Assembly (NCBI RefSeq): GCF_039654945.1
Contig: NW_027361676.1
Coordinates: forward strand, 42,098,001 to 42,162,000
DNA from: Dendrobates tinctorius
Lineage: Eukaryota
DNA length: 64,000 nt
Direction of reading: 5' to 3'
The position numbers were made by a program, and so were the translations under genes. The stretch's first letter is position 1, and every line of letters starts with the position of its first letter. The notes beneath the pieces were generated by a model, which did no database searches, was not told the origin of the DNA, and saw only the letters and a program-made list of their open reading frames with translations. Below, piece by piece: positions 16,749 through 41,432 of the stretch.

Positions 16749-19700
16749 GGGTTTTTCTGGTTCTATTTACATATGGTATAGTATACCCTACTGAAGGCCA
16801 TTACAAGTCACCACAGACATATGATCATATAACGAAGATTATTAATACAGGCCTTAGATTTCTGAATGACTTGTAATATCCTTAGAAAGCTAAAGGGAAA
16901 CCGTCAGCAGGATTTTGCTCAATAAACTAAAGACAGTGTCAGGTCGGCGCCGTTATACTGATTACAATGATACTTGGTGATAAAATCCATTTTGTGGTTG
17001 TTGTCTGTATTTTCCCTTCACCCATGACAGCACACCTGAGAGAGGGATCCGCCCCACCAGGTCAGGAACCTACTGAAATATAAGGGGCGGCACCTCTCCC
17101 TGCTTCAGTTGGGTTCCTGTCCTGGAAGGGAATCCCACACTGACAGTGGCGGTGCCTGTCATAGGTGAAAGAGCCCAGGCCCGTCCTGGCGCGGGAAGAA
17201 CAGGTTACCTCACCTGTAGCGCCGGGCGTCTGGTAGCGCAGTCCCCGGGGTCTCCCTGGGGCTCCGAGTTTGAGCGGGTGGCGGCTCCTGGAGGCTCCAC
17301 AGCGCCTCCCTCCCCTCGCGAGTGCCCGCAGTCTCTCTCCTTCAGAACGCCTAGCATGGGAGGGCCACGGGCGTCTTCCGGCCGCTGACGTCAGTGGCGC
17401 AGGGCATCCTGGGAGCGCGCCGGCTGACGTCAGTAAGGCGACGGCAACATGGCGCCCGGTGTGACGCCGGCTGGCCTTTTTCTCAGGAAACGGCAGCGGT
17501 CCGCCGGCGGTTGCAGGGGGGAGGGGAAAAACGCTCACCGGGACCGAGGCTATTTAAAAGAGGAGGGCGGTCAGCATGGCCGGGTAACCATGGGGTCAGA
17601 GCAGGAACGGTCGCCGTCTCCACCGTCTCTGCCTCCTTCACAACCCTCCGCTCACAAGCATGGCAGCCGATCAAGCAGCAGTCGCCCCAGCCGTAGTTCG
17701 GGGGACTCTTTGAGATCCGGAGAGCACAGATCACGTGCTCCTCCACAGCCTCCAAGTTCAGTATCCTTGATTACGGGTGGTGAGTGATCTTCGTGAATGT
17801 TAGCAAGCTGTTAATAGGGGCCTTCTTTTGTTTGTTTAAATTCCTTAGGAAAAACCTAAGAAAGCAGGGAGTAAGAAGAACAATAGAGATTGTGCCATAT
17901 GTAAAAGCCCCCTAGCAAGAGACTGGCAGAAGGACCTTTGTGCCAGCTGCATCCAGCAAACCATGGCAGAAGAAGCGCCTAGTTTCGCAACCAACCTTAG
18001 ATCAGTTATCAGGTCGGAGATGGAAGGCTCGCTTAAAGCATTGTTAAAAAAGGGAAAAAGAGTAGGAAGGATTCCCCTAGCTCTATCTCAAGACTCTCTT
18101 CCTCGGCCTTATCTCAGGCCTCTTCCTCAGATAGCGACACGGGTGGCAAACCGTGTTTCACAGTAGAAGATACGCATGCTCTCCTCAAAGCCATCAGAGT
18201 GACAATGGGCCTACAGGAGGAAAAAACGGCTAAGTCCCTGGAGGACGTCATGTTCGGGGGACTAGAAGAGAGGAAGAAACGGACCTTTCCAGTCAATGAA
18301 AAGGTCCAGGCACTCGTTGAGAGAGAATGGAGGAAGCCTGAGAGGTCAGGAGCTCTTCCCTCCTCCTCTAAGAGAAGGTACCCCTTTGAGCCTAAGGACA
18401 CAGAAATATGGGACAAAGTCCCAAAGATTGACGTGGCGGTGTCCAGGTCATCCAAAAAATCGGCTCTGCCCTTGGAAGACCAGGGGTACTAAGGGAACCG
18501 CTAGATAAAAAGGCGGATTCCTATTTAAGACATGCATGGGAAGCAGCAGCAGGAGGATTGAAGCATGCAATAGCCGGCACCTGCACGGCGCATTCCCTAA
18601 TGATTTGGCTGCAGCAATTAGAGAGACTGGCTTCAAAAGTCTCAAGAGAAAAAATACTGGCAGATATGTATCTTCTGCATGTGGCAGCAGCATTTTTAGC
18701 GGACACCTCGGCGGACTCCATGAGGTTGACAGCTAGGGCGGCAGGATTATCAAACACCGCGAGGTGGGTGTTGTGGCTTAAGGGCTGTCCAGGTGATCTA
18801 CAGTCTAAAGCTAAGCTGTACTCTCTCCCATGTGATGGTCTGTTTTTATTCGGAAAAAACCTAGATGACATCCTAGAGAAGGCAAGTGACAGAAAGAAAG
18901 GCTTCCCCAGGTTTCCAGCGGATCAGAGGAGGCCGCCCTTTCGGAGAGAAAAATTCAACAGGGGCTGTCCCCTGGGGAATAGAAGGAGATGGGAAGATAA
19001 AAGGAAAAAGGAGTCCGGTTTTATGTTCGGTAGAGCTACCTCCACTTCCAAGAAATCCCCACAATGACGCCAGTATTCCGGTAGGGGGGAGATTGGCGTT
19101 CTTTTCCCAGGCCTGGGAGAACATCTCTTCCGGTGCCTGGATCCTAAACATCATAAGGGAAGGCCTCAAGATTCCTTTTTCACATCAGCCGAGAGCATCA
19201 TTTGCCATTACCCCTATCAGGAAGGTGATAGAAGAACAGTTGGCCTTGTCTGCTAGACAGATTCTTTCCAAAGTCCCGAGCAAACAGGAGAAAAGAGGGT
19301 TCTACTCGCCCCTCTTCCTGATAAAAAAAACCGGACCAGTCATTCGGAACAATCATAAACCTCAGAGGCCTCAATCAGTGGATAAAAAAATCAGACCTTC
19401 AAGATGGAGTTGGTAGCTACAGCCATAAAGCTGCTGCATCACGATTGTGTTATGGCCGTAATCGATTTAAAGGATGCATACTATCACATCCCCATCCACC
19501 CAGGTTATCAAAGATACTTTGTGGCTCTCTATATCCAGGGCATTCTCAGGCATTTTCAATTCAGAGCCCTTCCATTCGGCATATCCATAGCCCCAAGAGT
19601 TTTTACCAAAGTCGTAGCGGATATGACAGCCTTCCTCCGAATTCACGACACGATCATAATACCCTATTTGGACGATTTCCTAATAGTGGGCAGCTCAGAA

Positions 19701-21264
19701 GACTACTGTACTGTACAGTTGAAATGAGTGACCGACACCCTACAGAAACTCGGGTGGATGGTAAACGTAAAAAAATCAAGGTTACAGCCCCTAAAAAAAG
19801 ACTTTTCTAGGGTTTATCCTGGATTCTGACCAACAAGCCTGTCTACTACCAGAGGCCAAGATAGAAAAGGTGAGGTATGTAACCTTGGCTGCCCTAGACC
19901 AACCCCACATGATCCTGAGAAACGCTATGTCCTTGCTAGGTACCCTGACGTCCTGTATCCCAGCGGTCAGGTGGGCACAATTCCACACCCGACAGCTTCA
20001 AGGCGAAATTCTATCAGCACAAAGATCGCTGAGAGGGCGTTTAGAAGGAAGACTGGAGCTTTCCTTAGAGGTCAGGAGCTCTCTCAACTGGTGGTTAGAC
20101 AGGACAAACTTGACATCAGGGATGCTATGGGACAAACAAGTGACCGACATAATTCTGACAGATGCGAGCTCCTCAGGGTGGGGGGCACACCTAAGGAGTC
20201 ATGCGGCCTGGGGGCCTCAAAAACAGGGCGCATCTGCCAACTTGAGAGAACTGTGGACAGTGAGCAAAGCCCTAAGAGACTTTATTCCCCTCCTCAGTGG
20301 CCGCAATGTCCGTATCATGTCGGACAACAGAGTAACAGTGGCATACATCAATCAAAAGGGGGGTACAAGATCACACTCCCTAATAAAGGCGGCCAGCGAC
20401 ATTTTTCACAGAGTGGAACAGCACCTACTCTCTCTGATGGCATTGCATATAAAGGGGGTAGAGAATATAGAAGACTATTTCCTGAGCCGCAATATACTAA
20501 AGCAAGGGGAATAATGGGCTCTAAATCGGTCCGTTTTTCAAAAGATAATACAGCTATGGGGGGAACCGGTGATAGACCTCTTTGCCAACAAAAACAGGTA
20601 AGTGTTCATTAAACCCAAGGGAAAAGCTGTGGGCGGTGGACTCATTGCAAATTTCGTGGGACTTCAGGCTAGCCTATGCGTCCCCCCCCCCAGTGACTCT
20701 GATCCCAACAGTAGTGAGAAAAATCAGGAAAGATCAAGCCAGGGTGATCCTAATAACCCCGTTCTGGCCAAAAAGACCCTGGTTGTCTCTGATGCGGATG
20801 ATGTCCCTCTCAGATCCATGGATTCTGCCGGAAATCCCAGACCTGCTAACTCGGGGTCCAATATTCCACGCTCCGGTCAAGGGATTCCATCTGATGGCGT
20901 GGAATTTGAAAGGTCACTTCTAATGGATAGAGGGATCCCAGGGTTAGTGGCCACCCTGCTAAAAAGTAGGAAACCGGTAACGACTAATATCTATGGCAGA
21001 ACATGGAATAAATTCCTGCAGTTCTTGGGTAAGCCGTTAGAGCAAGAGCCCCCGATTAGTGCCATCTTGGAATTTTTACAGTCAGGATTACAGCTAGGGT
21101 TAGCGGTAAATACCCTTAAAGTTCAAGTATCCGCACTGGGCGCGCTATATAACTGCAATTTGGCAGCTAACAGATGGGTAGCTAGATTTATTAAATCCTG
21201 CCATAGGTCCAGACCTATTCCATTACCAAGAATAGCTCCATGGGATCTAAACCTGGAATTAGAG

Positions 21265-22028
21265 AAAACAAGGGCGGGGGCGCAGACATAGGGCTTCACC
21301 TGGTATAAATCAATTAAAATATAAAAGTACTCTGGAGTACTCACCCTTTTATGGGTTGTGTTCAGACACAACCACTCTCAACGTTTGTTGCAGTCATATA
21401 GCTGCTGCAGAGCTCGTGCAGGTGGCCAGCGTCCACTAGGTATCATAAGTTGAGGATCCAAGAAAAGCACTTCTGAGCATCCGCTCTGCTTTAGTGATAA
21501 GAATTCTTCAGAAATCCATATAAATCTTTCAAGTTCTTTATTATATGTACTACAGATGTTGCCATTCACATGGCAGATCTATGAAAGAACTAGAAGCATA
21601 TTGCCACAATTCCCAGTGTGCAAATATGCGAGTGAAAAATATAAAACCAAAGTGTTTAATTAAAAATGTGTTTTTAAAATTGTTTAAAAAATTATTTAAA
21701 AATTTTGTGGGGAAGTTTTTAAATCCCAAAAACCAACTGAATGAATGGACGGATACAAATATCTTTATGTGCAGCATGTGCAGGTTGACGCCCTTTTCTC
21801 ACAACGGGGGGTTACGCCCACACAACATATAAAGCTGTCATTTGTATAGACCGATCACAACTCTGTACTGTAACCTGAAGAAGAGGTGCGGTTTGTCACC
21901 TCGAAACGCGTAGTTTCTGTAGTACATATAATAAAGAACTTGAAAGATTTATATGGATTTCTGAAGAATTCTTATCACTAAAGCAGCGCGGATGCTCAGA
22001 AGTGCTTTTCTTGGATCCTCAACTTATG
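21265..22028. mobile_element. Non-autonomous Penelope-like element with inverted 5' copy, inserted in the DIRS YR gene
   Basis: 16-bp duplication AAACCTGG(A/T)ATTAGAG at 21249-21264 and 22029-22044. 114-bp inverted repeat 21443-21556 / 21916-22029. Hammerhead motif followed by AATAAA. Removing the insert restores YR WDLNLVLEALT. Confidence 0.8.
21866..21921 (+). ncRNA. Minimal type I hammerhead ribozyme motif
   Basis: Stem I TACTGTAAC/GTTTCTGTA (7/9 pairs), core CTGAAGA (21875-21881) + extra A, stem II GAGGTG/CACCTC, GAAA (21903-21906), palindromic stem III ACGCGT, GUA cleavage triplet ending at 21912. Confidence 0.78.
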
Positions 22029-23032
22029 AAACCTGGTATTAGAGGCCCTTACAAAAGAACCATATGAGCCTATTCAACAACTACCCATAAAGTATCTTAC
22101 CCTAAAAACGATTACACTAGTTGCCCTTACGTCGGCCCGTAGAGTAAGTGACTTGCAGGCTCTCTCAGTAAATCCACCTTATACACAAGTATTTCGGGAT
22201 ACGGTTGTATTAAAAGCAGACCCCGCATATCTGCCTAAGGTAGTATCAGATTTCCATCGAAGTCAGGAAATTGTCCTTCCCTCTTTTTGCGAAAATCCAA
22301 AAAATCCAGGAGAGGAAAAATTCCACAATTTGGATGTTAGGAGAGCCCTGCTAGAATATATATCTGTGACTAGCCAGTGGAGGAGGTCCCAGTCCCTATT
22401 CGTAGCCTTTCAGGGTGCCAGAAAGGGTTATGGAGTGTCAAAGGGGACTATTGCCAGATGGATTAGGGAGGCCATTAGTATAGCCTACTCAGCTAGTGGT
22501 GTTCCGATTCCTGACGGCATCAAGGCTTATTCCACCAGAGCCGTGGCGACCTCATGGGCTGAAAAGGCAGAGGTATCAATTTTGTAAGGCCGTCATCTGG
22601 GCCTCACCATCAACCTTCTTTAAACACTATAGATTAAACCTATCCTCCTCTGCTGACTTGACCTTTGGTAGAAGGGTGCTACAAGCGGTGGTCCCTCCCT
22701 AAGGTGTTTCGAAGTCTCCAAAAATCTCTCAGGTGTGCTGTCATGGTTGAAGGGAAAACCACCATGGTTACTTACCGGTAGCTGGTTTTTCCGGAACCCA
22801 TGACAGCACCCGTATATTTCCCCCCTTTTTCACCGTATGGGTGTGCACGCTAGTAGGGTGTATTTGTGTGATGTGGTGTTGGATAAACATGTAACTAACC
22901 GGGAAGTCCTCTCATGTCTGCCACCCCTTATATTTCAGTAGGGTCCTGGCGGGGCGGATCCCTCTCTCAGGTGTGCTGTCAGAAAAAACGGCTACCGGTA
23001 AGTAACCATGGTGGTTTTGTAGTTTTTAGTTA

Positions 23033-23804
23033 CCGTATATACTCGAGTATAAGTCGAGTTTTTCAGCCCCCTTTTGGGGCTGAAAAAGATCCCCCTCGAC
23101 TTATATTCGGGTCACGGTGCCAACTTACCTGGTCCCCGTCATCTCCGCAGTCCCAGTCGTCTCTGCGGTCCCCTGCAGCGTCCTGGCGGCGGGTGATGAT
23201 AGGGCCGCGGCGGCGTTCAAAATCTCTGCGCGCCGCTCTCTCCCATCCTCCGGCAGTGACGTGCAGGGGGCGCGATGACGTGGAAAGCACGCGCCCTCTG
23301 CCTGAGTCACTGAAGAGCCGGCGACGCTCAGGAGCAGCTGTCATCAACGTAGGTGAGTATATAGTGTTGTTTTTTTTTTTTTTTTTTTTTTAAAAGTCCA
23401 GCAGCGGCAGCAACATGATAGGATTACTGGTAATCCTATCACTTTGGGGGCAGCATTACGATATTTGGGCCACCATTCACTGTGCAGCATTTATGGGGGC
23501 ATATGTTGTGCAGCGTTATTTGGGCCAGCATTCACTGTGCAGGATTTATGGGGGCATATGTTGTGCAGCGTTATTTGGGCCAGCATTCACTGTGCTGCAT
23601 TTTGGGGGCATACTGTATGTTGTGCAGCATTATTTGGGCAACCATTCACTGTGCAGCATTTTGGGGGAATACTGTATGTTGTGCAGCATTAAATTTACCA
23701 GTATCTTCGGCAATTCCCACCCTAGACTTATACTCGAGTCAATACGTTTTCCCAGGTTTTTGAGGCAAATTTAGGGGGGTCGACTTATACTCGAGTATAT
23801 ATGG
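23033..23804. mobile_element. Non-autonomous pogo/Tigger-like DNA transposon with internal ~58-bp minisatellite
   Basis: TIR CCGTATATACTCGAGTATAAG / CTTATACTCGAGTATATATGG, TA duplication, tandem repeats ~23460-23690. Confidence 0.8.
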
Positions 23805-25340
23805 TATGTATTCTCGTGCCCCGGGGCAGCCTGTTGGGGGGGGGCGGGGGCTTTATGTGGTGCTCTGCTTACATATTTATCCTTGTGGGCTTATGACAGG
23901 TCACTGATGCTTCAGTGACCTGCTCCCTATTTTATATTAATGCATAGAATATTGTGGGGTTGGAAAAAAAAAATTATATCCAGCAAAATGGAGGTGCCTG
24001 CGCAGTAACATCTATGGGTAAGCAGATGGATGCTACTGCGCAGGTGCTGCCATCATTCTGCTGCAGTCACATTTCTTTTTCCTCCAGTAAAATGGCAGTG
24101 ACACTTGCGCAGTTGCATATATCAGTAAGAGATGCTACAGTACAGGCACCATTTTGCTGGATGTAAATTTTTTTTTTTTTTCTAACCCCACAATATTCTA
24201 TGCACTATGTAAGGGAGGGATCAGTGACCTGTCTGTCAGAAGCCATGCAGATGAATATGTAATCAGAGCGCCACAAAAAGCACCATCCACAGGCCGCCCC
24301 GGAGAACGAGAATCTCAGTAACTGAAAACTACAAATGCAGATTAAACAACCACAAGATGGATTTCATCACCAGGTATCATTTTATTCAGTATAACCGCAC
24401 CAACCTGACACTGTCTGTAGGTTACTGAGCACAATCCTGATGACTAGTTCGCTTTAAATCAAGAGTTGTAGCACTAGTTATATATTTTGCTGTACAATAA
24501 TTGGAGTAACTATGTTTGAGAAAAAAAATGGACCTATAAGCTTTCTATGAGTCTTTGCATGACTCTGCATGGATTCCGAGTTCTTCTGCCCGTATTTTTC
24601 AGTGATTGGTGAGGGTCTCAGGACTCTGATTTCCACTGATCAAAACTTATGACGTGTGGTTATAATACAGCAAAGGTTTTTCTTAAAGTTTAGTTACCCT
24701 TTCAGCTTTATTTACAGAAAACTACTTCCTGTTGGTATGACGTCTGTGTTGATTAGAAAGCCTAGTATAATGTTACAATGGTGCATATATATTCCTAGAG
24801 ACATAGCCTTGTACTCTGTATACGCTTGTTTTACTGATAAAATGGCCCAATGGTTCCGGCTGCATGCGCATCATTCCCATGTGATACTGCTAGTCCTGTT
24901 AGGGATAAAGCGGATGGCTTTGGCTCTTGGCTTCACTGTGTTCATGTGGGCACACTACTAATGGCTGTCTCTGCATTATGGCATGCTCTGTCACAATAAC
25001 AGCCGTAGTATTTGGTATCCATGGAAGTAATACTGACATACCGTGCACTTATTAATAACCGTATCTCCTGTCCTAATAGATGTTCTGCTTACAAATTACA
25101 GAGACTTTCCACCCGTTTATTAACCCTTGCTTCATTTCATTCATGCCGAAGTAAGCTACTGCTGAGCACCGCTATAATGGCAGCGTAGTACAGAGGTCTG
25201 CTAGAAGACAGGGAGTGATCACAGCAAATAAACCACTGCTAAAATCTGTACAGTGCACAAGCCACTAAAGCGTGTACAGATTGTAGTCTGGTCTTCTCAC
25301 AATCCTGAGATATCCGAAGTATAGTGTTCTTGAGTTATAA

Positions 25341-25637
25341 GGCTATGTGCACATGTAGTTTTTTGCCTCTGCGGATTTTGTAGAGAAAACCGCAGGTAAA
25401 TCCGCAGGACAAAAGTCCTGCGGTTTTACACCTCATAATGGATGAGGTGTAAAACTGCAGCGTTTCTGCACCAAACAATTGACATGCTGCGGTTTGTAAA
25501 CCGCAGCATGTGCGCAGCTTTTTATTTATTTCCATAGGAAATAAAGGTACTGTACAACGCAGCAGAATCTGCTGCGGACCCGCAGGTGCAGAAACGCTGA
25601 AGAACCGCAGCGGAATCCACACCGTTTGCACATACCC
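25341..25637. mobile_element. PIF/Harbinger-type MITE
   Basis: Termini GGCTATGTGCACA / TGCACATACCC, TAA flanks, CCGCAG/CTGCGG internal repeats. Related to 52429-52720. Confidence 0.75.
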
Positions 25638-25796
25638 TAAGCTTTCTTCTGTCCATTATTCCCCTGTGAGAATCAGTGAGCACGACTATATGTAGTGTGC
25701 CTGAAAAATCCACAATGGACCATTATTACAGCTGACACTACCACATTACATGCCGTATATTCCTGACACCTATCATAGACAGTGCGCTGATACTAA

Positions 25797-26212
25797 GGCT
25801 TCTTTTATACTTACCGGGTTTTTGCTGGCCATTTTTGCAGCCTCAATAGATTTCTATGGGGCCGCAAAATCGGCACGCAAAAATTAGTCGGAGCGTCGTG
25901 TACCGTATGGCCATGAGGTCCGTATATGCGGCCGTGTAAAAAGGTCGAGCCTGCTTGATCTTTTTCACAGCTTACGGACACGGCCCCCATAAATGGGGAC
26001 GCAAAAACAACGGAAGTTGTTTTTGCGGTGCACCGTCACTTCGGTTTTGCGGAATGCCATTTTTTTCCAATACTTCTTCCATAGTATTGGAAACCTGAAA
26101 AACTGCGATCCACAAGTTTTTTGCGGTCCGTTACTGCAGCAGACCATGAAAATTGCGGCGGTAAGGCCCACAATAACGGGCCGCAAAAAACCCGGTAAGT
26201 GTAAAAGAAGCG
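25797..26212. mobile_element. PIF/Harbinger-type MITE
   Basis: TIR GCTTCTTTTATACTTACCGGGTTTTT / AAAAACCCGGTAAGTGTAAAAGAAGC, TAA flanks. Confidence 0.78.
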
Positions 26213-26426
26213 TAAGCAGCTACTCCGGATTATTTTAAGACTAAGAAATGTGTGGTTTTGTATTTCTTTGGAATTTTTATGTAAACTTTGACAAAGCCTC
26301 TAGTTGTGTGTCTGCCATTCCACCCCTCAGCCCATAACATTGCCATTATTTTCTGTTGCTTCATTCTTTTTGTTTTCTCCATTTGTAGTTCCAACTCAGT
26401 TATTAGCATAACATGATCTGTTTCAG

Positions 26427-26502
26427 GACTGTCTTGGGGATCATCACAAAGAAGAACATATTAGAACATCTCGAGAATCTAAAGCAGCACGTGGAACCCT
26501 TG
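26427..26502 (+). CDS. CLCN3: CLCN3 alternative 76-nt cassette exon (ClC-3B/e isoform)
   Basis: TTTCAG| acceptor, |GTGATT donor. In phase with the upstream exon it reads (G)TVLGIITKKNILEHLENLKQHVEPL, matching the mammalian ClC-3B insert. Missed by the ORF track. Confidence 0.92.
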
Positions 26503-27221
26503 GTGATTAGACAAAACGCCTCTAACTTGTAGTCACTTCTTAGGAGACAGGAAGCATGAAATTTGACTACTGTCACACATCACCAGGTTAACCGAAGAGC
26601 TTGTTGCTCCAGCCGATCGCAGCCGCTGACGGCCACGGCTGAAAGTTCTCATTGAGCTCTGCAGGCGGCAGAAACCTCTGCTCAGCATTTCCGATCTATT
26701 TGACATAAGATTATCAAAGCATCGTAGTAGGCACCAGCTCTTTAATTTTAGAATTTTTACAGAAGTAGAGTAGCTGATCTGGCATTAGATATAAATGTTA
26801 TTATTTCATATCACTAATGTCATATTAGTGTGTGTCGCCTCATTGGACCATGGCTTGCTTTCTGGCTATGAGATTGTAGGCACAAAATAAAATGGTCAGA
26901 AGCACGTGCTGGGGTGAGCAAAATGTGCGATAGTAGTATGTTATACATGTGCTCTTACCTGGTCATAGGACTAGATATCAGCTGCGGCTCTGCAGTCTCA
27001 ATACTCCAGCACGTTTGTAAAAGTTGTTCACACATTTTTCACAATGGACCAATTAAAGGGGGACATAAATTATTGACAGGTCTAGGCTGCAGGGTTGCAC
27101 TTTGCTTACCTAGTACATGTATCCACACACACATTCAAAAATTCTTAATAAATATAATTCTGGATTAATTATTCAACGGCTCATATACAAAAAAAATCAA
27201 TCCTTAAAAGATACTTTATTA

Positions 27222-27812
27222 ACCAATCTGAAACACTTTTAAGAGACGGTCCTGGCGCTTGCTGGTCTTTCTTGGGCACCCTGGAGCCTTTTTGGCAACA
27301 AGGGAACCTCTCTCCTTGAAGTTCTTGATGATGCGATAGATTGTTGACTGAGGTGCAATCTTTCTAGCTGCGATACTCTTCCCTGTTAGGCCATTTTTGT
27401 GCAGTGCAATGATGACTGCACATGTTTCTTTAGAGATAACCATGGTTAACAGAAGAGAAGCAATGATGCCAAGCACCAGCCTCCTTTTAAAGTGTCCAGT
27501 GGTGTCATTCTTAATCATGACAGATTGATCTCCAGCCCTGTCCTCATCAACACCCACACCTGTGTTAATGGAGCAATCACTGAAACGATGTTAGCTGGTC
27601 CTTTTAAGGCAGGGCTGCAATGATGTTGAAATGTGTTTTGGGGGATAAAGTTAATTTTCTAGGCAAATATTGACTTTGCAAGTAATTGCTGTTAAGCTGA
27701 TCACTCTTTATAACATTCTGGAGTATATGCAAATTGCCATTAGAAAAAAGGAAGCAGTAGACTTTGTAAAAATTAATATTTGTGTCATTCTCTAAACTTT
27801 TGGCCATGACTG
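27222..27812 (-). mobile_element. Tc1 5' fragment (left TIR + paired-like HTH)
   Basis: TIR CAGTCATGGCCAAAAGTTT with TA at 27813. ORF ISKETCAVIIALHKNG...QSTIYRIIKNF...GCPRKTSKRQDR. Confidence 0.85.
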
Positions 27813-28491
27813 TACAAGCGATCTGATCATTGCCTGTATGTAGCAGAGCCGAATGGATAATGGGAGCTTCTAGTCTCCCTTGGAGACTTTTGAAGCATGC
27901 CAAAAGTTTTTTTTAAAAAAAGTTTTAAAAAATATAACAAAATAAAAAAATAACATTCAAATCACCCCCCTTCCGCCCCATTGAAAATAAATCAATAAAA
28001 AAATCAAACATATCAATCTGGTATTGCTGCGTTCAGAATCACCTGATCTATCAATATAAAACAAAGAATTAACCCGATCGCTAAGAGTGATGAGAAAAAT
28101 AGTCAAAACTCCAAAATGACGTTTTTTTTGGTCACTTCAACATTGTATTAAAATGCAATAACGGGTGATCAAAAGATCATATCTGCACCAAAATGGTATC
28201 ATTAAAAATGTCAGCTCTGTACGCAAAAAATAAACCCTCACGAGAGATGGAGACGCTGTGGGTATCAGAAAATAATACAAATTTGTTTTGTGGGTTTTTT
28301 TTTTTTTTTTTAAACAAACTTTGGATTTTTTTTTTCACCACTTGGATGAAAAAGAACCTAGACATAGACAGTCAGTTTTAGCATTTAGTGAACAAGGTAA
28401 GAAAGAACAAAAACAACTATGGGATTGCACTTTTCTTGCAATTTCACCGCACTTGGAATTTTTTTCCTTTTTCCAGTACACGATATGTTAA

Positions 28492-29878
28492 CCCCTTAAC
28501 TCCCAGAGCTTTTTGCGTTTTTCACTCCCCTTCTTTACAGAGCCATAACTTTTTTATTTTTCCATCAATATGGCCATTTGAGGGGCTTATTTTTTGCGGG
28601 ACGAGTTGTTCTTTTGAATGACACCATTGGTTTTACCATGTCATGTATTCTAAAACGGGAAAAAAATTCAAAGTGCTGTGAAATTGCAAAACAAAAGTGC
28701 AATCCCACACTTGTTTTTTTTTTTTGGCTATTTTGCTAGTTTCATTAGATCAGGGTTCCCCAACTCCAGTCCTCAAGGCCCTCCAACAGATCATGTTTTC
28801 AGGATTTCCTTTGTATTGCACAGGTGAATCAATAATCACCTGAGCAATACTAAGGAAATCCTGAAAACATGATCTGTTGGAGGGCCTTGAGGACTGGAGT
28901 TGGGGAACCCTGCACTAGATGCTAAAACTGACCTGCCATTATGATTTTACAGGTCATTACGAGTTCATAGATCCCAAACATGTCTAGGTTCTCTTTTATC
29001 TAAGTGGTGAAAAAAAATTCCAGTTTGCTAAAAAAAAAAAAAAATTGCGCAACTTTCTGAGACCCGTAGCGTCTCCATTTTTTGTGATCTGTGGTTGGGT
29101 GCAGGCTTATTTTATGCGTGTTGGGCTGATGTTTTTAATACCAATTTTGTGCAAATACGTTCTTTTGATCGCGCGTTATTGCTTTTTAATGCAATGTCGC
29201 GGCGACCAAAAAAACGTTATTCTGGCGTTTTGAATTTTTCGCTAAGCCATTTAGCGATCGGGTTAATGCTTTTTTTTTATTGGGTGATTCTGAACGCGGC
29301 GATACCTAATGTGTTTTTATTGTTTGTTTGTTTTTTTTCTTTTGATTGGGGCGAAAGGGGTGACTTGAACTTGTATTTTTTTTTTTTTTTTTACTTTTGG
29401 CATGCTTCAATAGCCATAGGAGGCTAGAAGCATGCACAACTCGAACGGCTCTGCTACATATAGGTGATGAGCAGATCGCCCATATGTAGCAGATTTACTG
29501 CATTGCTTTGAGCGCTGACCATCGGGCGGCGCTCAAAGCAATGTGCCTGCAACAACCATAGAGGTCTCTGAGACCTCTTCTTGTCAAGGCAACGAGACGC
29601 CAACCCCCGATCACGTGACGGGTGTCGGCGATGAGCTCACTTCTGGCGCGACGGCCGGAAACACTAGTTAAATGCCCACTGTCAGCTTTGACAGCGGGAT
29701 TTAACTAGTTAATAGGTGCGGGAGGATGGCGATTCCGTTCGCGCCTATTGCGCGCACATGTCAGCTGTTCATAACAGCTGACATGTCGCGGCTTTGAGGT
29801 GGGCTCACCACCGGAGCCCACCTCAAAGCAGGACATCCTTACCTATGACGTACTATTCCGTCATCGGTAAGGAAGGGG
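28492..29878. mobile_element. Non-autonomous piggyBac-like (TTAA) element nested in an oppositely oriented related element (~27820-29960)
   Basis: TTAA|CCCCTT...AAGGGG|TTAA ends. The flanking DNA is reverse-complement-similar to the interior and to 53570-54398. Confidence 0.75.
28751..28912. mobile_element. hAT-type palindromic MITE (162 bp)
   Basis: TIR CAGGGTTCCCCAACTCCAGTCCTCAAGG, 8-bp TSD CATTAGAT/CACTAGAT. Second copy at 48207-48368. Confidence 0.88.
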
Positions 29879-29967
29879 TTAAATCCAATGGTGTCTTTCA
29901 AAAGTACACCTCTTCCTGCAAAAACCAAGCCCTCACATGACCATATTGACCAGAAAGTACTACTAGT

Positions 29968-30830
29968 ATAAGGATGGGGGCCCTGCATACCAGGATAGTG
30001 ATGGAGGCCCTGCATACCAGGATAGTGATGGGGGCCCTGCATACCAGGATAGTGATGGGGGCCCTGCATACCAGGATAGTGATGGGGGCCCTGCATACCA
30101 GGATAAGTGATGGGGTCCTGCATACCAGGATATGGATGGGGGCCCTGCATACCAGGCTAAGGATGGGGGCCCTGCATACCAGGCTAAGGATGGGGGCCCT
30201 GCATACCAGGCTAAGGATGGGGGCCCTGCATACCAGGCTAAGGATGGGGGCCCTGCATACCAGGCTAAGGATGGGGGCCCTGCATACCAGGCTAAGGATG
30301 GGGGCCCTGCATACCAGGCTAAGGATGGGGGCCCTGCATACCAGGCTAAGGATGGGGGCCCTGCATACCAGGCTAAGGATGGGGGCCCTGCATACCAGGC
30401 TAAGGATGGGGGCCCTGCATACCAGGCTAAGGATGGGGGCCCTGCATACCAGGCTAGGGATGGGAGGCCCTGCATACCAGGCTAGGGATGGGAGGCCCTG
30501 CATACCAGGCTAGGGATGGGAGGCCCTGCATACCAGGCTAGGGATGGGAGGCCCTGCATACCAGGCTAGGGATGGGAGGCCCTGCATACCAGGCTAGGGA
30601 TGGGAGGCCCTGCATACCAGGCTAGGGATGGGAGGCCCTGCATACCAGGCTAGGGATGGGAGGCCCTGCATACCAGGCTAAGGATGGGAGGCCCTGCATA
30701 CCAGGATAGGGATGAGGACGATCATTCCTGCCAGGATAGGGATGAGGGGGGGCCGTGCATACCAGGATATAGATGAGGGATCCATTCATACCAGCATGGG
30801 GATGGGGAGCCATATATTCCAGGATAGGGG
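29968..30830. repeat. 27/28-bp minisatellite (GGATGGGGGCCCTGCATACCAGGCTAA) inside a Tigger-like element ending ~30930
   Basis: About 30 tandem units visible directly. A right TIR-like GTCTTATAGTACGAAAAATACGG|TA follows. Confidence 0.92.
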
Positions 30831-32608
30831 GATATTAAGTACAGAATTAACCACATTTTTGCTTACACTTTTTTTCTCCTAATTTCCTCCTCTAAAACCT
30901 AGGTGCGTCTTATAGTACGAAAAATACGGTATATACCTTTTCATAGGTATATGGCAGCACTTTTACCGCTAGTAAAGACTGCACAGTTGCTACAAAACAT
31001 GCTCCCCTAACATAAATGTGGCATCACTGTAAAAAAAAAAAAAAAAAAAAAAAAACTTCAATACAATATGTATATGTACAGCACCAAAATACCATTAAAT
31101 GTCATAACTTATCCACAATAAGCAAGTGCTCCTACAGCTGGGTCCATGGAAAACGCAATCGTTATGGCTATCGAAAGGGATGGATGTAAAAGTTGCACTA
31201 TAAAGGCAAAGACTAGGTGCTGCAGTTTGCGGTTAAAGAACGAAGCGACCATATTCTGGAGAATCAGGTGACCCCCTTCCATATCGCTAAAATATGGTAT
31301 CACTTTGGCTAAGGGCAGACCTGTACTCAAAGCAACTCCCAAAGCGCCGTGCAGCACAAGACTCCTAGGAACACCAAATACTGCAGTGCAGTCCGACTGA
31401 TCTCCACCGCAGCATCTAGCTCGCAGTGCCTCCATAGAAGCACCACTGTCAGAATCGTCCATATCCACCTCTGCCCCCCCCCCCCCCCCGGCAGGTCCTG
31501 TGCTTTCATGCTCACAGAAACTGTGCTGTTTCTGCTTTATACTTATACCCGGCACTGCCAGGACTCTGAGACATGATGTTCTAGGGTAAGCAAAAGGTAT
31601 TCCTGCAGTCTGGACTCTCAATTTCCACATATATTTTGTATATTATAATCATCACCTGCAAAGAAAGTTTCACGGATTATGTCTGGGACTACAAGAATGT
31701 AAAAGGTATATCACCCATTTTCTGTGTTAGTTTCTCCTTAACTGAAATCCCCAGTATTTCATAGTGTTGCATTGTTCAGCTAATTGCATTAGAGCTGCCA
31801 TCATCCCTCGCCTCATCTGACCTCTGTGCTAATTCTTTGAGTTACATGTCCCCTCTCCTCTGTAATAATACATGTAGAAGAACTGGTGCCCGAAATCTAG
31901 TATAGAGCCTTATGTACCAAAGCTTTGCTGTAGCTTTCCATTTGTGAATGCACTAAAGACCTTGTTAGACTCTGCTGGTTGCTTTGACTATGTTGCAGAT
32001 GTCAATGACCGCTTTAGTATGTTCTCACTTTTTCAGTTTGTTCCCAATACAGAAGAATTTCATGCGTCCTCTCACAAGCGGAAGTACTAACCGGAGTAAC
32101 AAGGGCATCTGCTGAATATGTTCTGCTTTGTGCTGTTATCCTGGTGGAGGTTTTTATTATGATGAATTCAGATTTCAGACTTTTTTTTTGTTTGGCCTTC
32201 TGCAGTTACGTGTAACTCGTATTTTGTAAGCTCTGTAATGCAATCTTCTTACTGCAGTAGTGGAAATTGCTTTACCCAAGCAATTTCCATTTTAGCCAAA
32301 GACCTGTCACATGAGCATACAGTCCTATGCGTGAACAGCATGGGAGAGCAGTAGATGTGGAGCTGACTGTCCCTATAATTTTTTTATTTTGATTGCTTGT
32401 TAAAAATGACTTGATTTTGTAGAGGAACATCTATTTCACCCAGAAAACAGTGTGTCCAATTGTAATAGCCATATAGTTATGTGATTAAGTCGGCTGTTCC
32501 CATGCAAAAACAAGTGATTGTCTAAGGCTCTGTTCACATGTCCAGTTGTCATCTGTTTGTAACGGATCCAGTATTTAAAGAAAATAAAATAACTGGATTC
32601 GTTATAAC

Positions 32609-32919
32609 TAGTGATGAGTGAGTATACTCGTTGGTCGGGTTTCCCCGAGCATGCTCGGGTGATCTCTGAGTATTTGGAAGTGTTGGGAGATTTAGTTTCC
32701 GTCTCCATAGCTGCATGATTTGCGGCTACTTGACAGCCTGAATACATGTGGGGATTTCCTAACAAACAGGGAATCCCCTCATGTATTCAGGCTGTCAAGT
32801 AGCCGCAAATCATGCAGCTGCGGAGACAGAAACTAAATCTCCGACCACATCCAAATACTCGGAGATCACCCGAGCATGCTCTGGGAAACCCGACCAGCAA
32901 GTATACTCACTCATCACTA
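32609..32919. mobile_element. hAT-type palindromic MITE nested in a Harbinger-type MITE (~32526-38647)
   Basis: TIR TAGTGATGAGTGAGTATAC, 8-bp TSD GTTATAAC/GTTATAAG. A related half-copy lies near 58703. Confidence 0.82.
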
Positions 32920-34008
32920 GTTATAAGCAGAGCAAAAACAGATCCACCGTTTGGTTTCATTTTTTGTTCTTGGATCAGTTTTTATTAGAGGTGTTTTTTT
33001 AATATCTCTTCTGTTTTGAGTATGAACTGTGCTTAAAAAACAGTAACTTAATGGATGAAATAACTGATGACCATCCATTATGAGACTCCCTATAGACTTT
33101 AATGCTTAAAAAAATGGTTTCGTTTGCTTTCCATTGTTTTAACCAGACAAAAAGTTGAGCAGACTGTTTTATGATCCAACTTTCTTTTTTACTCTTCGCC
33201 ACGACAGCACCCACTGGAGGTATCGGATCCGCCCATTTGGAACAGGAAACCCTACAGGAAAGATAAAAGGGGCGGTCCGCCTTTCCTCCTCAGTTTTGGT
33301 TTCCTGTTCCAAATGGAGCAGGATCCTGCAGGATCTTACCTGGGCCATGCATCCGCCTGTGCGGTCTCCTCGGGAACGGCAGGGGCTGCGGTCCGGAAGC
33401 GGCGTCGGGGGAGATTCCGTTTGACGGTTCCCCCCTCGTCTGGTGGCATAACGGTGATGACCGGGTCCGGGGAGGGCCGCCCGGTCTTACCAGGGAGCGG
33501 GCCGGTCTGGCATCCGGAGGCAGAACACCCCTCCCCCCCTCCATCGGTGGAGATACAGCGTGGTGAAGCCATGAGCGCGCGAACCGCGCGTGTGAGTAGC
33601 GGTGGCGCAGGAGCTGGCCGGCGCCCGACGCTCCTATACCCCGGAAGTAATGGTTGAACTTCCGGGGTAGGATGGCGATGACGCGGCGCATGCGCCCTGA
33701 CACAGGGCGACTTCCGGGGGCACAACAGGAGTGAAGATAAAACAGCGCTGCAACGATGGAACCATGTCGTCCCCCACGGAGTCGCAGGCCCCAGCAGGGG
33801 ATTCAGCTGGGGGCAATTCCACCAGGGACCGCAGCGCCAGGACAGAGACTGCCCGCAGGAGCGAGGCAGCAGATACCAGATCCAGACTGTCTCAGCCATC
33901 CGACCCGGTATTAAGCTTCACTGGGTGAGTGTGCAAAGTATATACTCTACCTATTAAGCTAACCTCTCCCCCCCCCCCCCTCTCTTTACCTTTGACCTCC
34001 CACTTCAG

Positions 34009-35229
34009 TCAAAGAAAAAAGAAAAAATTAAACATAAAGAATGCGCATTATGTTCAGAGCCTCTCCCTGACTCCTACCCCAAAAAACTCTGCAAACAATG
34101 CATGAAAGAAACCAGGCAGGGGTCGACGATATCTTCTAAAGATATCCGAGCCATAATTAGGGAGGAGATACAAGCCATCAACCGCGCCAGCACTCCCTCA
34201 GAGTCCAGTCATAAGAAACAGGTCGTTGTTAGTTCAGAGTCAGAGGAAGAACAGGAGTTAAATTCAGGCTCCGCATTCACGTCCTCATCGTCATCCTCGG
34301 AGATGGAAGGACGCGCATGTTTTCCACTGGACAGCGTAGATAACCTAGTAAAAGCGGTTAGAAATACTATGGGGTGTGAAGAGGAAAGGGGAGCCCAAAC
34401 CGCGCAGGACATTATGTTTGCGGGATTGGCAGAAAAAAAGAGGAGATCATTTCCGGTGATACCGGCAATTAAGGACCTCATCAAAAGAGAGTGGGAAAAA
34501 CACGACCAGAGGGGTTTTCTCCCATCAGCCTCAAAACGGAAGTATCCGTTCACTGATGAAGACCTATTGAAATGGACTAAAATACCAAAGGTGGATGCCG
34601 TCATAGCCTCCACTTCCAAACAGACCTCGATCCCGGTCGAGGACGCAGGATTGTTAGCAGACCCATTAGACCGAAAGGCAGAATCTTCGCTCAAAAGGTC
34701 CTGTGAGTCCACCACCGGGGTATTCAAACCTGCAATAGCCAGCACATGTACTGCTAGATCAATGCTGGTATGGCTAGATCAATTAGACCAGCAGATCGAG
34801 CAAAGAGTGTCAAGGGAGAAACTGCGTGCAGCCATCCCGTTGATAAGAGGTGCAGCTGCCTTTATGGCAGATGCTTCAGCGGACACCCTAAGACTGGCAG
34901 CGAGGTCGGCAGCCCTGGTGAATAACGCCAGACGCGCGCTGTGGATAAAAAGCTGGAAAGGGGACGCACAATCAAAATCCAAAATTAGTGCAACCCCATG
35001 CGAGGGTGAGTTCCTCTTCGGGAAAGCCTTAGACGAAATTCTCGCCAAGGCAAAAGAGAGGAAAAAGGCCTTCAGTGATTCTCCCATTCCGTTTTATAGG
35101 AAAACCTTTAAGAGACGGCCATTCGGGAGAAGAAGACAGTCGGACAGAACGAATAGATGGGCCACGAAAGACGAAAAGCAGAAGGGTACCATCTTCAGAG
35201 GGCCAACATATAGGAGAGATAAAAATTAA
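34009..35229 (+). CDS. DIRS B gag main exon (C4 zinc finger + DIRS gag core); probable first exon 33764-33907
   Basis: Open from the acceptor at 34008: SKKKEKIKHKECALCSEPLPDSYPKKLCKQC continues in frame into ORF 34102-35229 (PKVDA, LADPLDRK, RRALW, LFG). Confidence 0.8.
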   Translation, partial: SKKKEKIKHKECALCSEPLPDSYPKKLCKQCMKETRQGSTISSKDIRAIIREEIQAINRASTPSESSHKKQVVVSSESEEEQELNSGSAFTSSSSSSEMEGRACFPLDSVDNLVKAVRNTMGCEEERGAQTAQDIMFAGLAEKKRRSFPVIPAIKDLIKREWEKHDQRGFLPSASKRKYPFTDEDLLKWTKIPKVDAVIASTSKQTSIPVEDAGLLADPLDRKAESSLKRSCESTTGVFKPAIASTCTARSMLVWLDQLDQQIEQRVSREKLRAAIPLIRGAAAFMADASADTLRLAARSAALVNNARRALWIKSWKGDAQSKSKISATPCEGEFLFGKALDEILAKAKERKKAFSDSPIPFYRKTFKRRPFGRRRQSDRTNRWATKDEKQKGTIFRGPTYRRDKN

Positions 35230-37126
35230 AAGTTTAGACCCACCAGTTGGGGGTAGATTAAAATTTTTTGTTACCAAATGGGAACAAATTACGTTAAGCC
35301 CATGGATTTTGAATATAATCAAGGAAGGAATAAAGATTGAATTCCTTCAGATCCCTTATGAATTCTTTGTTATAACTCGCCTTAATTCCTCAGTTCAGCA
35401 AAAGGCTCTCGAAGACGAGATTCGAGTCCTACTAGCTAAAAAAGTTTTAGTTGACGTCCCTGAGGAACAAGAGGGTAGAGGCTTTTACTCTCCCCTGTTT
35501 TTGGTTTCTAAACCAGACGGTACGTTTAGAACCATTATTAATTTAAAGAAGCTTAATTCATTTATAAAAAATTATAACTTCAAAATGGAATCAATTAGAT
35601 CCACTATAAAGCTTCTTTTCCCAAGTTGCGTAATGGCAGGGATTGATTTAAAAGATGCTTATTATCATCTCCCTATTCACAATAGATTCCAGAAATACCC
35701 AAGAGTCGCAGTGGAAGTCGAGGGCAGGATTCGTCATTTCCAATACGCGGCCATGCCCTTCGGGCTTTCCACGGCACCAAGAATATTTACCAAGGTGATG
35801 GCAGAAGTGATGGCCTACCTTCGCCAAAAGGACACACTGATCGTGCCGTATTTAGACGACTTCCTAATAATTGGGAATTCAGTCAAACAATGTACCGAAC
35901 GCGTGACTGACGCAATCTCCTCTTTTCAGAGCCTTGGCTGGATCATCAATATCCAAAAGTCCAGACTCGATCCACAATCTCTCCAGACATTTCTAGGATT
36001 TCAACTAGATTTCTTGACCCAGAGATGTCTACTACCTCAGGTAAAAATCACCCTCACGAAATAAAAAATACGAGCAGCTATAGATAGACCACGGGTGTCC
36101 TTGAGAGGAGCAATGTCACTATTAGGATCACTAAATTCTTGCACCCCGGCAGTCCGGTGGGCCCAGTACCATGTCCGTACACTACAACACCAGATCTTCC
36201 AAGAGGATAAGCGACATAGTGGTCATTTACAGAGCAAAATAACCCTGTCACAAGAAGTCTTGACTTCTCTAGAGTGGTGGTTAGAAGATGACCATTTATG
36301 TTCAGGAGTTCCATGGGTTATAGTTCCATCCTGTATCGTAACCACCGATGCCAGTCCCCAGGGCTGGGGAGCCCACATGGAGAATGGGTTTCATCAGGGA
36401 AGGTGGAATAGAGAGGAATGCGAGTACTCATCCAATTTAAAAGAACTGACTGCAGTGTTCTATGCTCTATACAACTTCCTTCCGCAGCTCCAACAGAAGC
36501 ATGTCAGGATCCTATCGGACAACACCACCACAGTGGCCTATATAAACAGACAAGGAGGAACTCGATCAGAGACTCTGATGTCTTCAGCGGCAAGAATTTT
36601 AAACTTAGCGGAAGACTATTTTTTGTCCCTCTCGGCCCTTCATATCAGAGGCGAGAGCAATCAAAAGGCAGACTTCCTAAGCCGACACACTCTACGGCAA
36701 GGAGAGTGGTGCCTCAATCAAAAGGTCTTCAGGGACATAGTAGCCCTATGGGGACAACCCGAGGTGGACCTTTTCGCCACAAAGGAGAACAGGCAGATAA
36801 AAACATTTGCCTCCCTATCTCCATCAGATCACCCAGACATACTAGACGCCCTTCTAGCTCCATGGAATTTCAACCTGGCGTATGCGTTCCCTCCATTGAT
36901 CCTCCTACCTCAAGTAATTCGGAAGATCAGAGACGACAAAGCAAGGATAATCTTAATAGCACCGTTCTGGCCAAAAAGACCGTGGTTTTCGTGGCTGCAG
37001 ATTATGTCAATAACAGATCCTTGGGTCCTTCCTTCGACTCCCAATCTACTCTCCCAAGGCCCCTTTTTCCACCCTCAAGTGGTCAGCTTGCACTTGACGG
37101 CGTGGAATTTGAGAGGCAGTTATTGA
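35075..37126 (+). pseudogene. DIRS B RT-RNaseH-methyltransferase-like ORF with one in-frame stop (36062-36064)
   Basis: VGGRL, FYSPLFLV, DLKDAY, MPFG, YLDD, TDAS, SDN, ADFLSR, VDLFAT, YAFPP, WPKRPWF. ORFs 35075-36064 and 36095-37126 share a frame. Confidence 0.9.
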
Positions 37127-38140
37127 GGACAAGAGGATTCTCTGAGTCTTTAATTACTACACTACTACAAAGTAGAAAACAGTCCACAACCCAAATTTAC
37201 ACTAGAATATGGAAAAAATTTCTTCAATTCCATACAGTACCTCATACAGCAGAAGTTCCGATAATCCCAATCTTGGAATTTCTGCAGAAAGGGAAAGACT
37301 TAGGCTTAGCAGTAAATACGCTAAGAGTACAAATATCGGCATTAGGAGCACTATATGGCCATAATATAGCAGGCAACAAGTGGATAACTCGATTCATTAC
37401 AGCATGTGAACGAATAGCTCCAATCCACATACCCTCCGTCCCTACATGGGATCTAAATCTGGTCTTAGACGCCCTAACGGTAGACCCCTTTGAGCCGATC
37501 GACACAATACCCTTCAAATACTTAGCACTTAAAATGGCCCTCTTGGTAGCACTGACCTCAGCTAGAAGAGTGGGTGATACCCAGGCCTTGTCAATAGATC
37601 CACCTTTTTTTCCAAGAATACCAAGACAGATTGGTATTAAAACCAGACCCTGCCTACCTGCAAAAAGTGGCAACAAAATACCATAGATCTCAGGAGATAC
37701 TCCTCCCAACCTTCTATAAAAATCCCTCTACTCCGGAAGAGCAGAAGTTCCATACTCTGGACGTCAAAAGAACTGTCCTAAAATATATTGAGAGGTCCAA
37801 CAGTTGGAGGCAGAGTAGGGCCCTATTTGTTTCATTTCAGGGCTGTAAGAAGGGGTATGGCGTCACGAAGAGCACCATTTCCCGGTGGATCAGAGAGGCC
37901 ATTCGTTTAGCCTACTCCGCAAAAAACGAAGATCCTCCAGGGAACATCAGGGCGCATTCCACCAGGGCAATGGCAACTTCTTGGGCGGAAAAGGGAGACA
38001 TTCCGATCGAAACTATATGTAAGGCGGCAGTTTGGTCATCCCCTTCTACCTTCTATAACCACTATAGACTTGATCTTTCATCAACCTCTGACTTAAGCTT
38101 TGGCAGGACTGTCCTTGGCACGGTGGTCCCACCCAGGTGA
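36418..38140 (+). pseudogene. DIRS B tyrosine recombinase with one frameshift near 37605
   Basis: WDLNLVL, TSARRVGD (R), AHSTR (HxxR), AAVWSS, FYNHY (Y). ORFs 36418-37686 and 37631-38140 are offset by one base around a T-run. Confidence 0.88.
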
Positions 38141-41118: not shown

Positions 41119-41310
41119 GGGCTCTTACTCACATGCAAGAAACACGGACGAGTCTCGCATGTCAATACCCGCACTGCCGCCGACACTCGGGTCAGAGCGT
41201 TCAGCTGCATAGAAATACATGAAGCTAAACGCTCCGAACCGAGTGCTGGTGGCAGTGCGGGTATTGACATGTGAGACTTGTCCGAGTTTCTCGCATGCGA
41301 GTACGAGCCC
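41119..41310. mobile_element. Palindromic Harbinger-type MITE in the predicted CLCN3 3'UTR
   Basis: Termini GGGCTCTTACTCACATGC / GCATGCGAGTACGAGCCC, TAA duplication, arms complementary up to a short central loop. Confidence 0.85.
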
Positions 41311-41432
41311 TAAGGATGATGGCAGTAGCATGGATGCAGTTCTAGAAGTTACTATTCGGGCATTCTGATTATATCTAAATTACAAACCAACTGAAAGTGA
41401 CAGGTGGAGTTGCTCTGTATTGTGGAAATCCA

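Follow-up and report, generated by a model that had tools for sequence, protein, structure and literature searches.

A predicted short intron with twin donor sites at the 5' end of gag in a clade of frog DIRS retrotransposons

We analyzed 64,000 nucleotides (nt) of the genome of the poison frog Dendrobates tinctorius (RefSeq assembly GCF_039654945.1, contig NW_027361676.1, positions 42,098,001 to 42,162,000 of the forward strand; below, the window). The window contains two DIRS retrotransposons, which we call El1 and El2. In both of them, and in ten related elements, the 5' end of gag seems to be split by a short phase-0 intron with two donor sites, a weak one and, slightly further downstream, a strong one. 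We think it probable that Gag is translated only from RNA that is spliced at the weak donor, that unspliced RNA is copied, and that the strong donor is a conserved U1-type site that is kept for a reason at the RNA level. We infer the splicing itself, the donor used, and the role of the strong site; the anatomy of the elements, the conservation of the layout, the logic of the reading frames, and the lack of copies without the intron were read directly from the data and are described below.

A sequence-only reading of the window had proposed that both elements carry a leader that runs into a stop codon unless an intron of 88 nt (El1) or 101 nt (El2) is removed, and that removing it fuses the leader to a Lys-rich stretch and a CxxC-x12-CxxC finger in the gag frame. 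We found the ATG, the stop in the leader, the phase-0 GTAT donor, the downstream GTGAGT, the AG, and the finger at both loci just where that reading had put them (Table 1). If it is not spliced, the leader of El1 ends at a TGA at 17785-17787, inside GTGAGTGA, and the leader of El2 ends at a TGA at 33926-33928. The gag frame is also closed from the other side: in El1, by the TAG of the acceptor itself, and in El2, by a TAA within the intron that lies 17 codons upstream of the acceptor. Exon 2 would begin at 17849 in El1, with the Lys-rich stretch and then the finger, and at 34009 in El2, where the finger is in frame with a 406-codon gag. In El2, the candidate branch-point A is 55 nt from the weak donor and 38 nt from the strong donor, and it opens an AG-free zone of 48 nt. 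The GTGAGT donors lie 19 nt (El1) and 17 nt (El2) past the weak donors and, as had been claimed, are out of frame with the same acceptor: judging from the reading frames alone, with the exons handled separately, this junction would lead to a stop after 3 codons in El1 and after about 32 codons in El2.

We then compared El1 and El2 with ten relatives: three from Ranitomeya variabilis, two from R. imitator, one each from Phyllobates terribilis, Bufo gargarizans, Engystomops pustulosus, and Dendropsophus ebraccatus, and one Logan contig. For these annotated or assembled relatives we used the DNA, and we placed the introns by matching the prefix and the suffix of each protein to the genomic frames. 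The 12 elements span four families of frogs (Dendrobatidae, Bufonidae, Leptodactylidae, and Hylidae), all of which belong to the Hyloidea. El1 and El2 themselves are quite divergent, with 33% amino acid identity over the finger region and DNA that cannot be aligned.

All 12 elements have the putative phase-0 intron, with a length of 74-120 nt (median about 88 nt) when measured from the weak donor. In each case the leader is opened by an ATG (followed by Ser in seven elements) and has 15-113 codons, and a CxxC-x12-CxxC finger lies at residues 9-18 of exon 2, after a Lys-rich opening. The gag frame is interrupted within the intron in every element, and in nine of them the stop is the acceptor's own TAG. 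A GT donor, a pyrimidine tract, an AG acceptor, a branch-like motif, and an AG-free zone are present in all 12, although two lack a strict yTnAy motif. Pyrimidines make up 0.6-0.85 of the AG-free 3' part in 11 of the 12 elements, versus 0.49 on average for the window. The second donor, G/GTRAG, is found 17-34 nt past the weak donor in every element. Conservation of the donors, the acceptor, and the phase, which the sequence-only reading had proposed to test, was seen in each individual element. Divergent DIRS families, from four families of frogs, have in common the predicted intron, its phase, the fusion of leader and finger, and the tandem donors, and the layout with twin donors is almost certainly functional.

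The weak donor itself seems to be under selection. It has the form G/GTA(T/C/A), and usually CCG/GTAY, in all 12 elements, with a G at -1 in all except El1, which has an A. The last codon of exon 1 encodes proline in eight elements and is always CCG in these; the nucleotide (the G at -1), and not just the residue, thus seems to be selected. In 5 of the 11 elements that we scored, including both copies in the window, the weak donor is the sole in-frame GT of the entire leader. The weak-donor junction was also chosen by annotators: it is used in the RefSeq models and in one independent annotation by a GenBank submitter (for Engystomops).

Closely related copies give a similar picture. El2 and two Ranitomeya copies (L001 and L014) form one family, in which all seven gap runs in the leader are multiples of 3, versus two of nine in the intron. 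The intron is 65-69% identical within this family, which is at least as high as for the flanking coding sequence, and conservation is highest in two blocks, one made up of both donors and their spacer and the other of the region of the branch-like CTAAC. Among the source genome's own copies, as represented in contigs, we saw indels at 33914, 33963, and 33977, which are in the spacer and the intron, and none in the leader exon.

The position of the finger is a further argument from coding. In 11 of the 12 elements, exon 2 has no Met ahead of the finger. For an AUG to be placed in front of the finger, the leader exon would therefore have to be joined to exon 2 by splicing at the weak donor. This bears on an alternative that we consider unlikely, namely, that the strong GTRAG site is the sole donor used. 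The leader would then be an upstream open reading frame (ORF) that ends soon after the junction, Gag would start downstream (at an internal AUG, at a non-AUG codon, or by reinitiation), and the "weak donor" would be kept for some other reason. Under this alternative, it is hard to see why a finger that is conserved in all 12 elements would lie ahead of the first available Met, why the upstream site would have a G at -1 and a fixed CCG codon, as if it were selected as a donor, or why all of the indels in the leader would be multiples of 3. On the other hand, the alternative fits well with the strength of the downstream site, which is conserved in all 12 elements, and with the expectation that a strong proximal donor normally wins. 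In El2, there is also an arrangement at 34102-34105 that resembles termination-reinitiation: the first ATG of the gag frame (at 34102) and the TGA that would end the strong-donor frame overlap as ATGA. This overlap is absent from El1.

To rank the donors, we scored them with an approximate vertebrate matrix that is suitable only for ranking. By this measure, the strong donors of the 12 elements, at 8.0 to 9.6 bits, outrank the weak donors, at -2.7 to 5.2 bits. Sites with at least 8 bits occur at 0.57-1.3 per kb in the elements, and just 2-10% of shuffled 45-nt stretches contain one. Because all 12 elements have such a site 17-34 nt downstream of the weak donor, versus 2-10% in the shuffles, the strong donor is not there by chance, even though the elements are related to each other.

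Nevertheless, the strong donor does not seem to be kept for its coding effect. Its phase varies among the elements (0, 1, or 2), which is difficult to reconcile with its being the only donor for Gag. We scanned for alternative acceptors in 11 elements (all but L014). In five of them, a stop codon in the leader frame precedes the strong donor, and another two do not have any alternative acceptor that would restore the frame. An ATG-started ORF in the phase of the strong donor is present in only two of the 11. L001 has an extra ATG, 8 nt upstream of the leader ATG, that shares its frame with the strong donor, but this ATG is not kept in the other elements. We therefore rejected an in-frame route from the strong donor to Gag, via an alternative acceptor or an ATG, as none is conserved in these 11 elements. 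Because there is no such route, the strong donor is probably conserved for a function at the RNA level, not for coding.

One potential explanation is geometric. If it is measured from the strong donor, the intron would be only 54-95 nt long, with 65 nt or less in eight of the 12 elements and 69 nt or less in nine. The candidate branch motifs are 46-61 nt from the weak donor versus 25-38 nt from the strong donor. Among human GT-AG introns, lengths below 65 nt are rare and the peak is near 83-85 nt (PMC4463651). So, our preferred guess is that the strong site may be a poor donor despite its consensus sequence, being too close to the branch site and giving too short an intron.

The sequence-only reading had suggested another role for the two donors, a switch in which the weak donor gives the gag mRNA and the strong donor, joined to an acceptor further downstream, gives an mRNA for the reverse transcriptase (RT) and the tyrosine recombinase (YR). 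Two conserved donors do share one leader, and retroviruses make subgenomic mRNAs from a donor in the leader. However, we found no evidence for the switch, and we think it very unlikely indeed: the RT ORF overlaps the end of gag, the phase of the strong donor is not conserved, and no partner acceptor for the GTGAGT site appeared in contigs from four sequencing runs of the source organism (described below). Given the overlap of the RT and YR frames with the 3' end of gag, it is also not obvious how they would be served by a gag mRNA in the wrong frame.

The four runs (X1, X5, X8, and X10) come from a set of ten from the source organism, none of which is recorded as RNA; they are of uncertain library type, and one is guessed to be RNA. 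We placed their contigs on positions 33300-38350, which cover most of El2. No contig had a joint that left 33924, at the strong donor, for a distant acceptor. The only joint nearby runs from 33932 to 34953, is found in a single contig with 20 nt on one side, and does not start at the donor. We also found no intronless copies in the contigs of the four runs, and the intron is kept in all 12 elements. This agrees with the earlier proposal that the genomic RNA must stay unspliced. Should the runs be DNA, few or no intronless copies exist, which is what copying of unspliced RNA alone would produce. Should X1 instead be RNA, most of this RNA is unspliced. The Gag proteins that we found only in Logan start in the intron or past the finger, which implies that they derive from unspliced contigs. 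A search of the protein collection for spliced fragments, with a 100-residue query from exon 2, gave no match.

Several observations weigh against our preferred reading. First, the contigs cross the intron of El2 in unspliced form (for instance, 33818-34433 in X1 and 33919-34197 in X5), neither of the expected joints (33907^34009 or 33924^34009) is present in the contigs of the four runs, whose type is uncertain and from which a minor spliced form could escape, and no Logan contig or Logan-derived protein from other frogs is spliced. Second, the gene models that use the weak-donor junction may be driven by ORFs and not by RNA. In particular, one model from R. imitator (P0054) reads through the intron in another frame, which opens at an ATG 8 nt upstream of that of the leader and runs across the whole intron into gag. 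Third, the counts do not represent independent events, since the 12 elements are relatives of one another. Fourth, by the ordinary rules of splicing, a strong proximal donor should outcompete a weak one. Neither the steric limits that we invoke to explain why it might not do so, which are taken in part from human data, nor the donor matrix is derived from frogs, and in three elements the intron from the strong donor would be 83-95 nt, which is not short and weakens a purely steric account.

The first two of these points would also fit an alternative without any splicing. In that case, the conserved block would be a cis-acting RNA or DNA signal (a packaging signal, for instance, or a U1 site close to the promoter), and programs would have created the annotated introns as artifacts by bridging two open frames. 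Annotation pipelines will take any open frame, as P0054 illustrates, and no stretch of the region is better conserved than the 5' half of the intron. But a signal of this kind does not account for the full grammar of an intron in all 12 elements (GT, an AG-free and pyrimidine-rich 3' part, and AG), for phase 0 being held across intron lengths of 74-120 nt, or for a finger that cannot be reached from an AUG without splicing. We also found no conserved fold and no Rfam family. We consider this alternative highly unlikely.

As for RNA structure, we considered a conserved fold around the donors and rejected it: the El1 family has no consensus structure. A hairpin that might cover the strong donor in the El2 family was also rejected as evidence, as it involves three sequences only, with z-scores of -2.05, -0.32, and -1.76. 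A search of positions 15000-40000 against Rfam found no family at the gathering score.

We also asked if the intron might be of the U12 type, for which the consensus is a /RTATCCTT donor with, at 10-20 nt from the acceptor, a branch site similar to TCCTTAAC. In El1, the donor matches the full consensus, GTATCCTT, at 8 of 8 positions (17761-17768), a branch-like TTCCTTAG is present at 17841-17848, and an AG 12 nt further along (17859-17860) would preserve the frame. However, the match to the branch site is imperfect, El1 is a decayed copy, and ATCC at positions +3 to +6 is absent from the weak donors of the other 11 elements. We rejected a U12-type intron for the 12 elements as a group, given that the donor fits El1 only, and a U12-type intron in El1 alone is also improbable.

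Putting these observations together, we propose that in a clade of DIRS from hyloid frogs, a short U2-type phase-0 intron of 74-120 nt splits the 5' end of gag. Exon 1, with 15-113 codons, would provide the start codon and a disordered leader that evolves fast, and exon 2 would provide the Lys-rich stretch, the finger, and a LAP2alpha-like Gag core. To make full Gag, the RNA would have to be spliced at the weak donor, which is the distal one (consensus CCG/GTAY). Reverse transcription would act on the unspliced RNA, which would explain why every genomic copy keeps the intron. If the strong site is a poor donor, it would act as a docking site for U1, which could help the weak donor upstream, damp splicing so that much of the RNA stays unspliced, and/or protect or boost the promoter-proximal transcript; such benefits of promoter-proximal 5' splice sites are known. 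A more specific version of this idea, which we regard as speculative and rather doubtful, is that the conserved intronic 5' splice site is a built-in docking site for U1 that is too near the branch to be spliced, that activates the weak donor, and that marks or protects the unspliced RNA, so that geometry alone would partition the transcript into Gag mRNA and genomic RNA. If true, it would be a natural counterpart of the engineered U1 small nuclear RNAs that bind within introns, and a new expression strategy for tyrosine-recombinase retrotransposons.

The messenger RNA might also have its own start site. In X1, we saw no depth over 33300-33637 and depth from 33638 onward, while the other three runs do have depth over 33300-33637. 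Promoter-like motifs lie just upstream of the leader ATG, about 500 nt into the element, at 33640-33760 in El2, at 17400-17590 in El1, and at 2830-3000 in L001. These include an NRF1-type palindrome, GCGCATGCGC, at 33686, which is the only one in the window and is also present in a Ranitomeya copy; ETS-like CTTCCGG/CCGGAAGT sites; TGACGTCA in El1; and, some 30-40 nt ahead of the leader ATG, boxes that resemble TATA. Together, the motifs and the depth in X1 hint at an internal start for a messenger RNA that is distinct from the full-length RNA.

The putative intron is a feature of a clade of frog DIRS and not of DIRS in general, because a DIRS from Xenopus laevis (L013) has its gag in one exon and lacks the finger. 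Thus, the feature cannot be extended to vertebrate DIRS as a whole, the group named in the sequence-only reading. Among the matches listed in a profile search, all were from frogs. We found no description of an intron in gag in the DIRS literature as far as it is openly searchable, which leaves out older subscription papers, and a dedicated study of Xenopus DIRS (PMC9210276) does not mention splicing.

That El1 and El2 are DIRS1-like tyrosine-recombinase retrotransposons is clear from their inverted terminal repeats, a LAP2alpha-like gag, RT and RNase H, and a tyrosine recombinase (Table 1). LAP2alpha is a known Gag-derived domain of DIRS. A tblastn search with gag found no copies in the window besides these two, and the best protein matches are DIRS Gag models from poison frogs, with up to 87% identity (Dendrobates tinctorius). 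El1 has matches to LAP2alpha and RNase H, and both its gag and its RNase H are frameshifted. Many DIRS have a methyltransferase-like domain after RNase H; in El2, the ORF at 36418-37683 had no Pfam match at E of 0.01.

Table 1. Features of the two DIRS elements, in positions of the 64,000-nt window
Element	Feature	Positions	Strand	Description
El1	Whole element	~16891-24456	+	Old, decayed DIRS copy
El1	Left inverted terminal repeat arm	16891..17002	+	Partner 24345-24456; 112-nt arms, 85% complementary
El1	Exon 1 (predicted)	17590..17760	+	ACC-ATG at 17590 and 57-codon Ser/Arg/Pro-rich leader
El1	Intron (predicted)	17761..17848	+	88 nt, phase 0; weak GTAT donor GTATCCTT, pyrimidine tract, TAG acceptor
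El1	Proximal consensus donor GTG/GTGAGT	17780..17785	+	19 nt past weak donor, phase 1; intron would be 69 nt
El1	gag exon 2 (predicted)	17849..19067	+	Lys-rich stretch, CAIC-x12-CASC finger, LAP2alpha-like domain; interrupted by frameshifts
El2	Whole element	~33199-38502	+	Young DIRS copy
El2	Left inverted terminal repeat arm	33199..33297	+	Partner 38363-38461; 99-nt arms, 99% complementary
El2	Exon 1 (predicted)	33764..33907	+	ACC-ATG at 33764 and 48-codon leader, last codon CCG
El2	Intron (predicted)	33908..34008	+	101 nt, phase 0; weak donor CCG/GTATTA, long C/T tract, CAG acceptor
El2	Proximal consensus donor TGG/GTGAGT	33925..33930	+	17 nt past weak donor, phase 2
El2	Candidate branch region	33950..33963	+	Ends in CTAAC; best-conserved intron block versus Ranitomeya relative
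El2	gag exon 2 (predicted)	34009..35229	+	Lys-rich stretch, CALC-x12-CKQC finger, LAP2alpha-like domain (Pfam PF11560, E 2e-16)
El2	Reverse transcriptase ORF	35075..36064	+	Pfam RVT_1 match; overlaps gag end
El2	RNase H ORF	36095..37126	+	Pfam RT_RNaseH match
El2	Tyrosine recombinase ORF	37631..38140	+	Weak Phage_integrase match, below its cut-off
El2	Internal complementary region (ICR)	38185..38502	+	Pairs with right end, 58-nt arms, 97%; holds CCG/GTAAGT donor-like site at 38484

The sense strand of El2 has just three donor-like sites with at least 8 bits: the one in the intron (33925), one near the overlap of gag and RT (35006), and CCG/GTAAGT in the right-end/ICR segment (38484), which resembles the CCG/GTA of the gag donor. 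Outside the two elements, a second match to the twin-donor pattern (CCGGTA...GGTAAG) is present at 51141-51176 on the minus strand. It has no gag homology nearby and is probably a chance match (0.17 were expected and 2 were found).

Other repeats are present in and around the elements. El1 contains a foreign insert at 21249-22044, with a 122-nt inverted repeat (arms at 21435-21556 and 21916-22037, 98% identity). The sequence-only reading had labeled this insert as a Penelope-like hammerhead element; it had no match in Rfam at the gathering score. Between El1 and El2, at 29880-30770, are two adjacent tandem arrays with periods of 27 nt and 28 nt and about 18 and 10 registers, respectively. Finally, there are near-perfect palindromes at 32602-32926, 41118-41311, and 28746-28917, with arms of 159, 93, and 82 nt and loops of 7-8 nt; these may be foldback elements or similar to miniature inverted-repeat transposable elements.

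Introns that are retained in retroelements have been described before, and the statement in the sequence-only reading that retrotransposons normally lose their introns upon reverse transcription is too sweeping, as it ignores copia, BARE, Ogre, and the retroviruses; its corollary that the copied RNA stays unspliced is the part that fits our data. Ogre, a Ty3/gypsy element of legumes, has an intron between its ORFs (Steinbauerova et al. 2008, cited in PMC3735527). As in the frog DIRS, the genomic copies of Ogre keep the intron. Much as we propose here, coding parts are brought together by splicing, which acts on just a fraction of the RNA, so that unspliced RNA is left as a template. Unlike the frog elements, Ogre is a plant element with long terminal repeats (LTRs) and an integrase, its intron lies between gag-pro and the RT region instead of within the 5' end of gag, and the account in PMC3735527 describes no tandem donors.

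In copia and BARE1, a spliced subgenomic RNA is dedicated to Gag (PMC3735527). Here too, splicing sets the supply of Gag and the RNA that is replicated is unspliced, and the intron of BARE is also small (104 nt). The difference is that the unspliced RNA of copia and BARE1 encodes Gag as well, and splicing removes pol or creates a stop, whereas the unspliced RNA of the frog DIRS would encode the leader only, so that Gag would depend on splicing.

The strong site can be compared to the major 5' splice donor in the leader of retroviruses, which is a consensus U1 site near the 5' end that is retained in the unspliced genomic RNA (for context, see PMC10309623 and PMC3856414). The strong site of the frog DIRS is likewise a U1-type site near the 5' end. 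But the retroviral donor is upstream of the AUG of gag, Gag is made from unspliced RNA, and the donor serves the env and accessory mRNAs.

The early region of simian virus 40 (SV40) has alternative 5' splice sites for large T and small t that share one acceptor, and the proximal intron is about 66 nt, a size that limits its use. The frog DIRS have a similar arrangement of two donors to one acceptor with a very short intron from the proximal donor. In SV40, however, both products are in frame and functional, and SV40 is a DNA virus that is not copied through RNA.

A further comparison is with the DIRS-like families of Xenopus (PMC9210276, and L013 in our data). These share the inverted terminal repeats, the LAP2alpha-like gag, RT and RNase H, and the tyrosine recombinase with El1 and El2, but L013 differs in its uninterrupted gag and its lack of a CxxC finger. 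Overall, our data partly support the view that the frog DIRS are retroelements with a retained functional intron, as in copia, BARE, and Ogre, in an order for which the literature that we searched has no such description.

To our knowledge, DIRS are the least understood order of retrotransposons, and we know of no account of how their overlapping ORFs are expressed. If the start codon of gag is in a separate exon, then the spliced RNA would be the messenger for Gag and the unspliced RNA would be the template. This would be a simple answer to the conflict between translation and replication, which retroviruses and LTR elements solve in other ways. It would also matter for annotation: pipelines for transposable elements that rely on ORFs will miss the true N terminus of Gag and its zinc finger. 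More broadly, the twin donors may offer a compact natural test case of splice site strength versus intron geometry.

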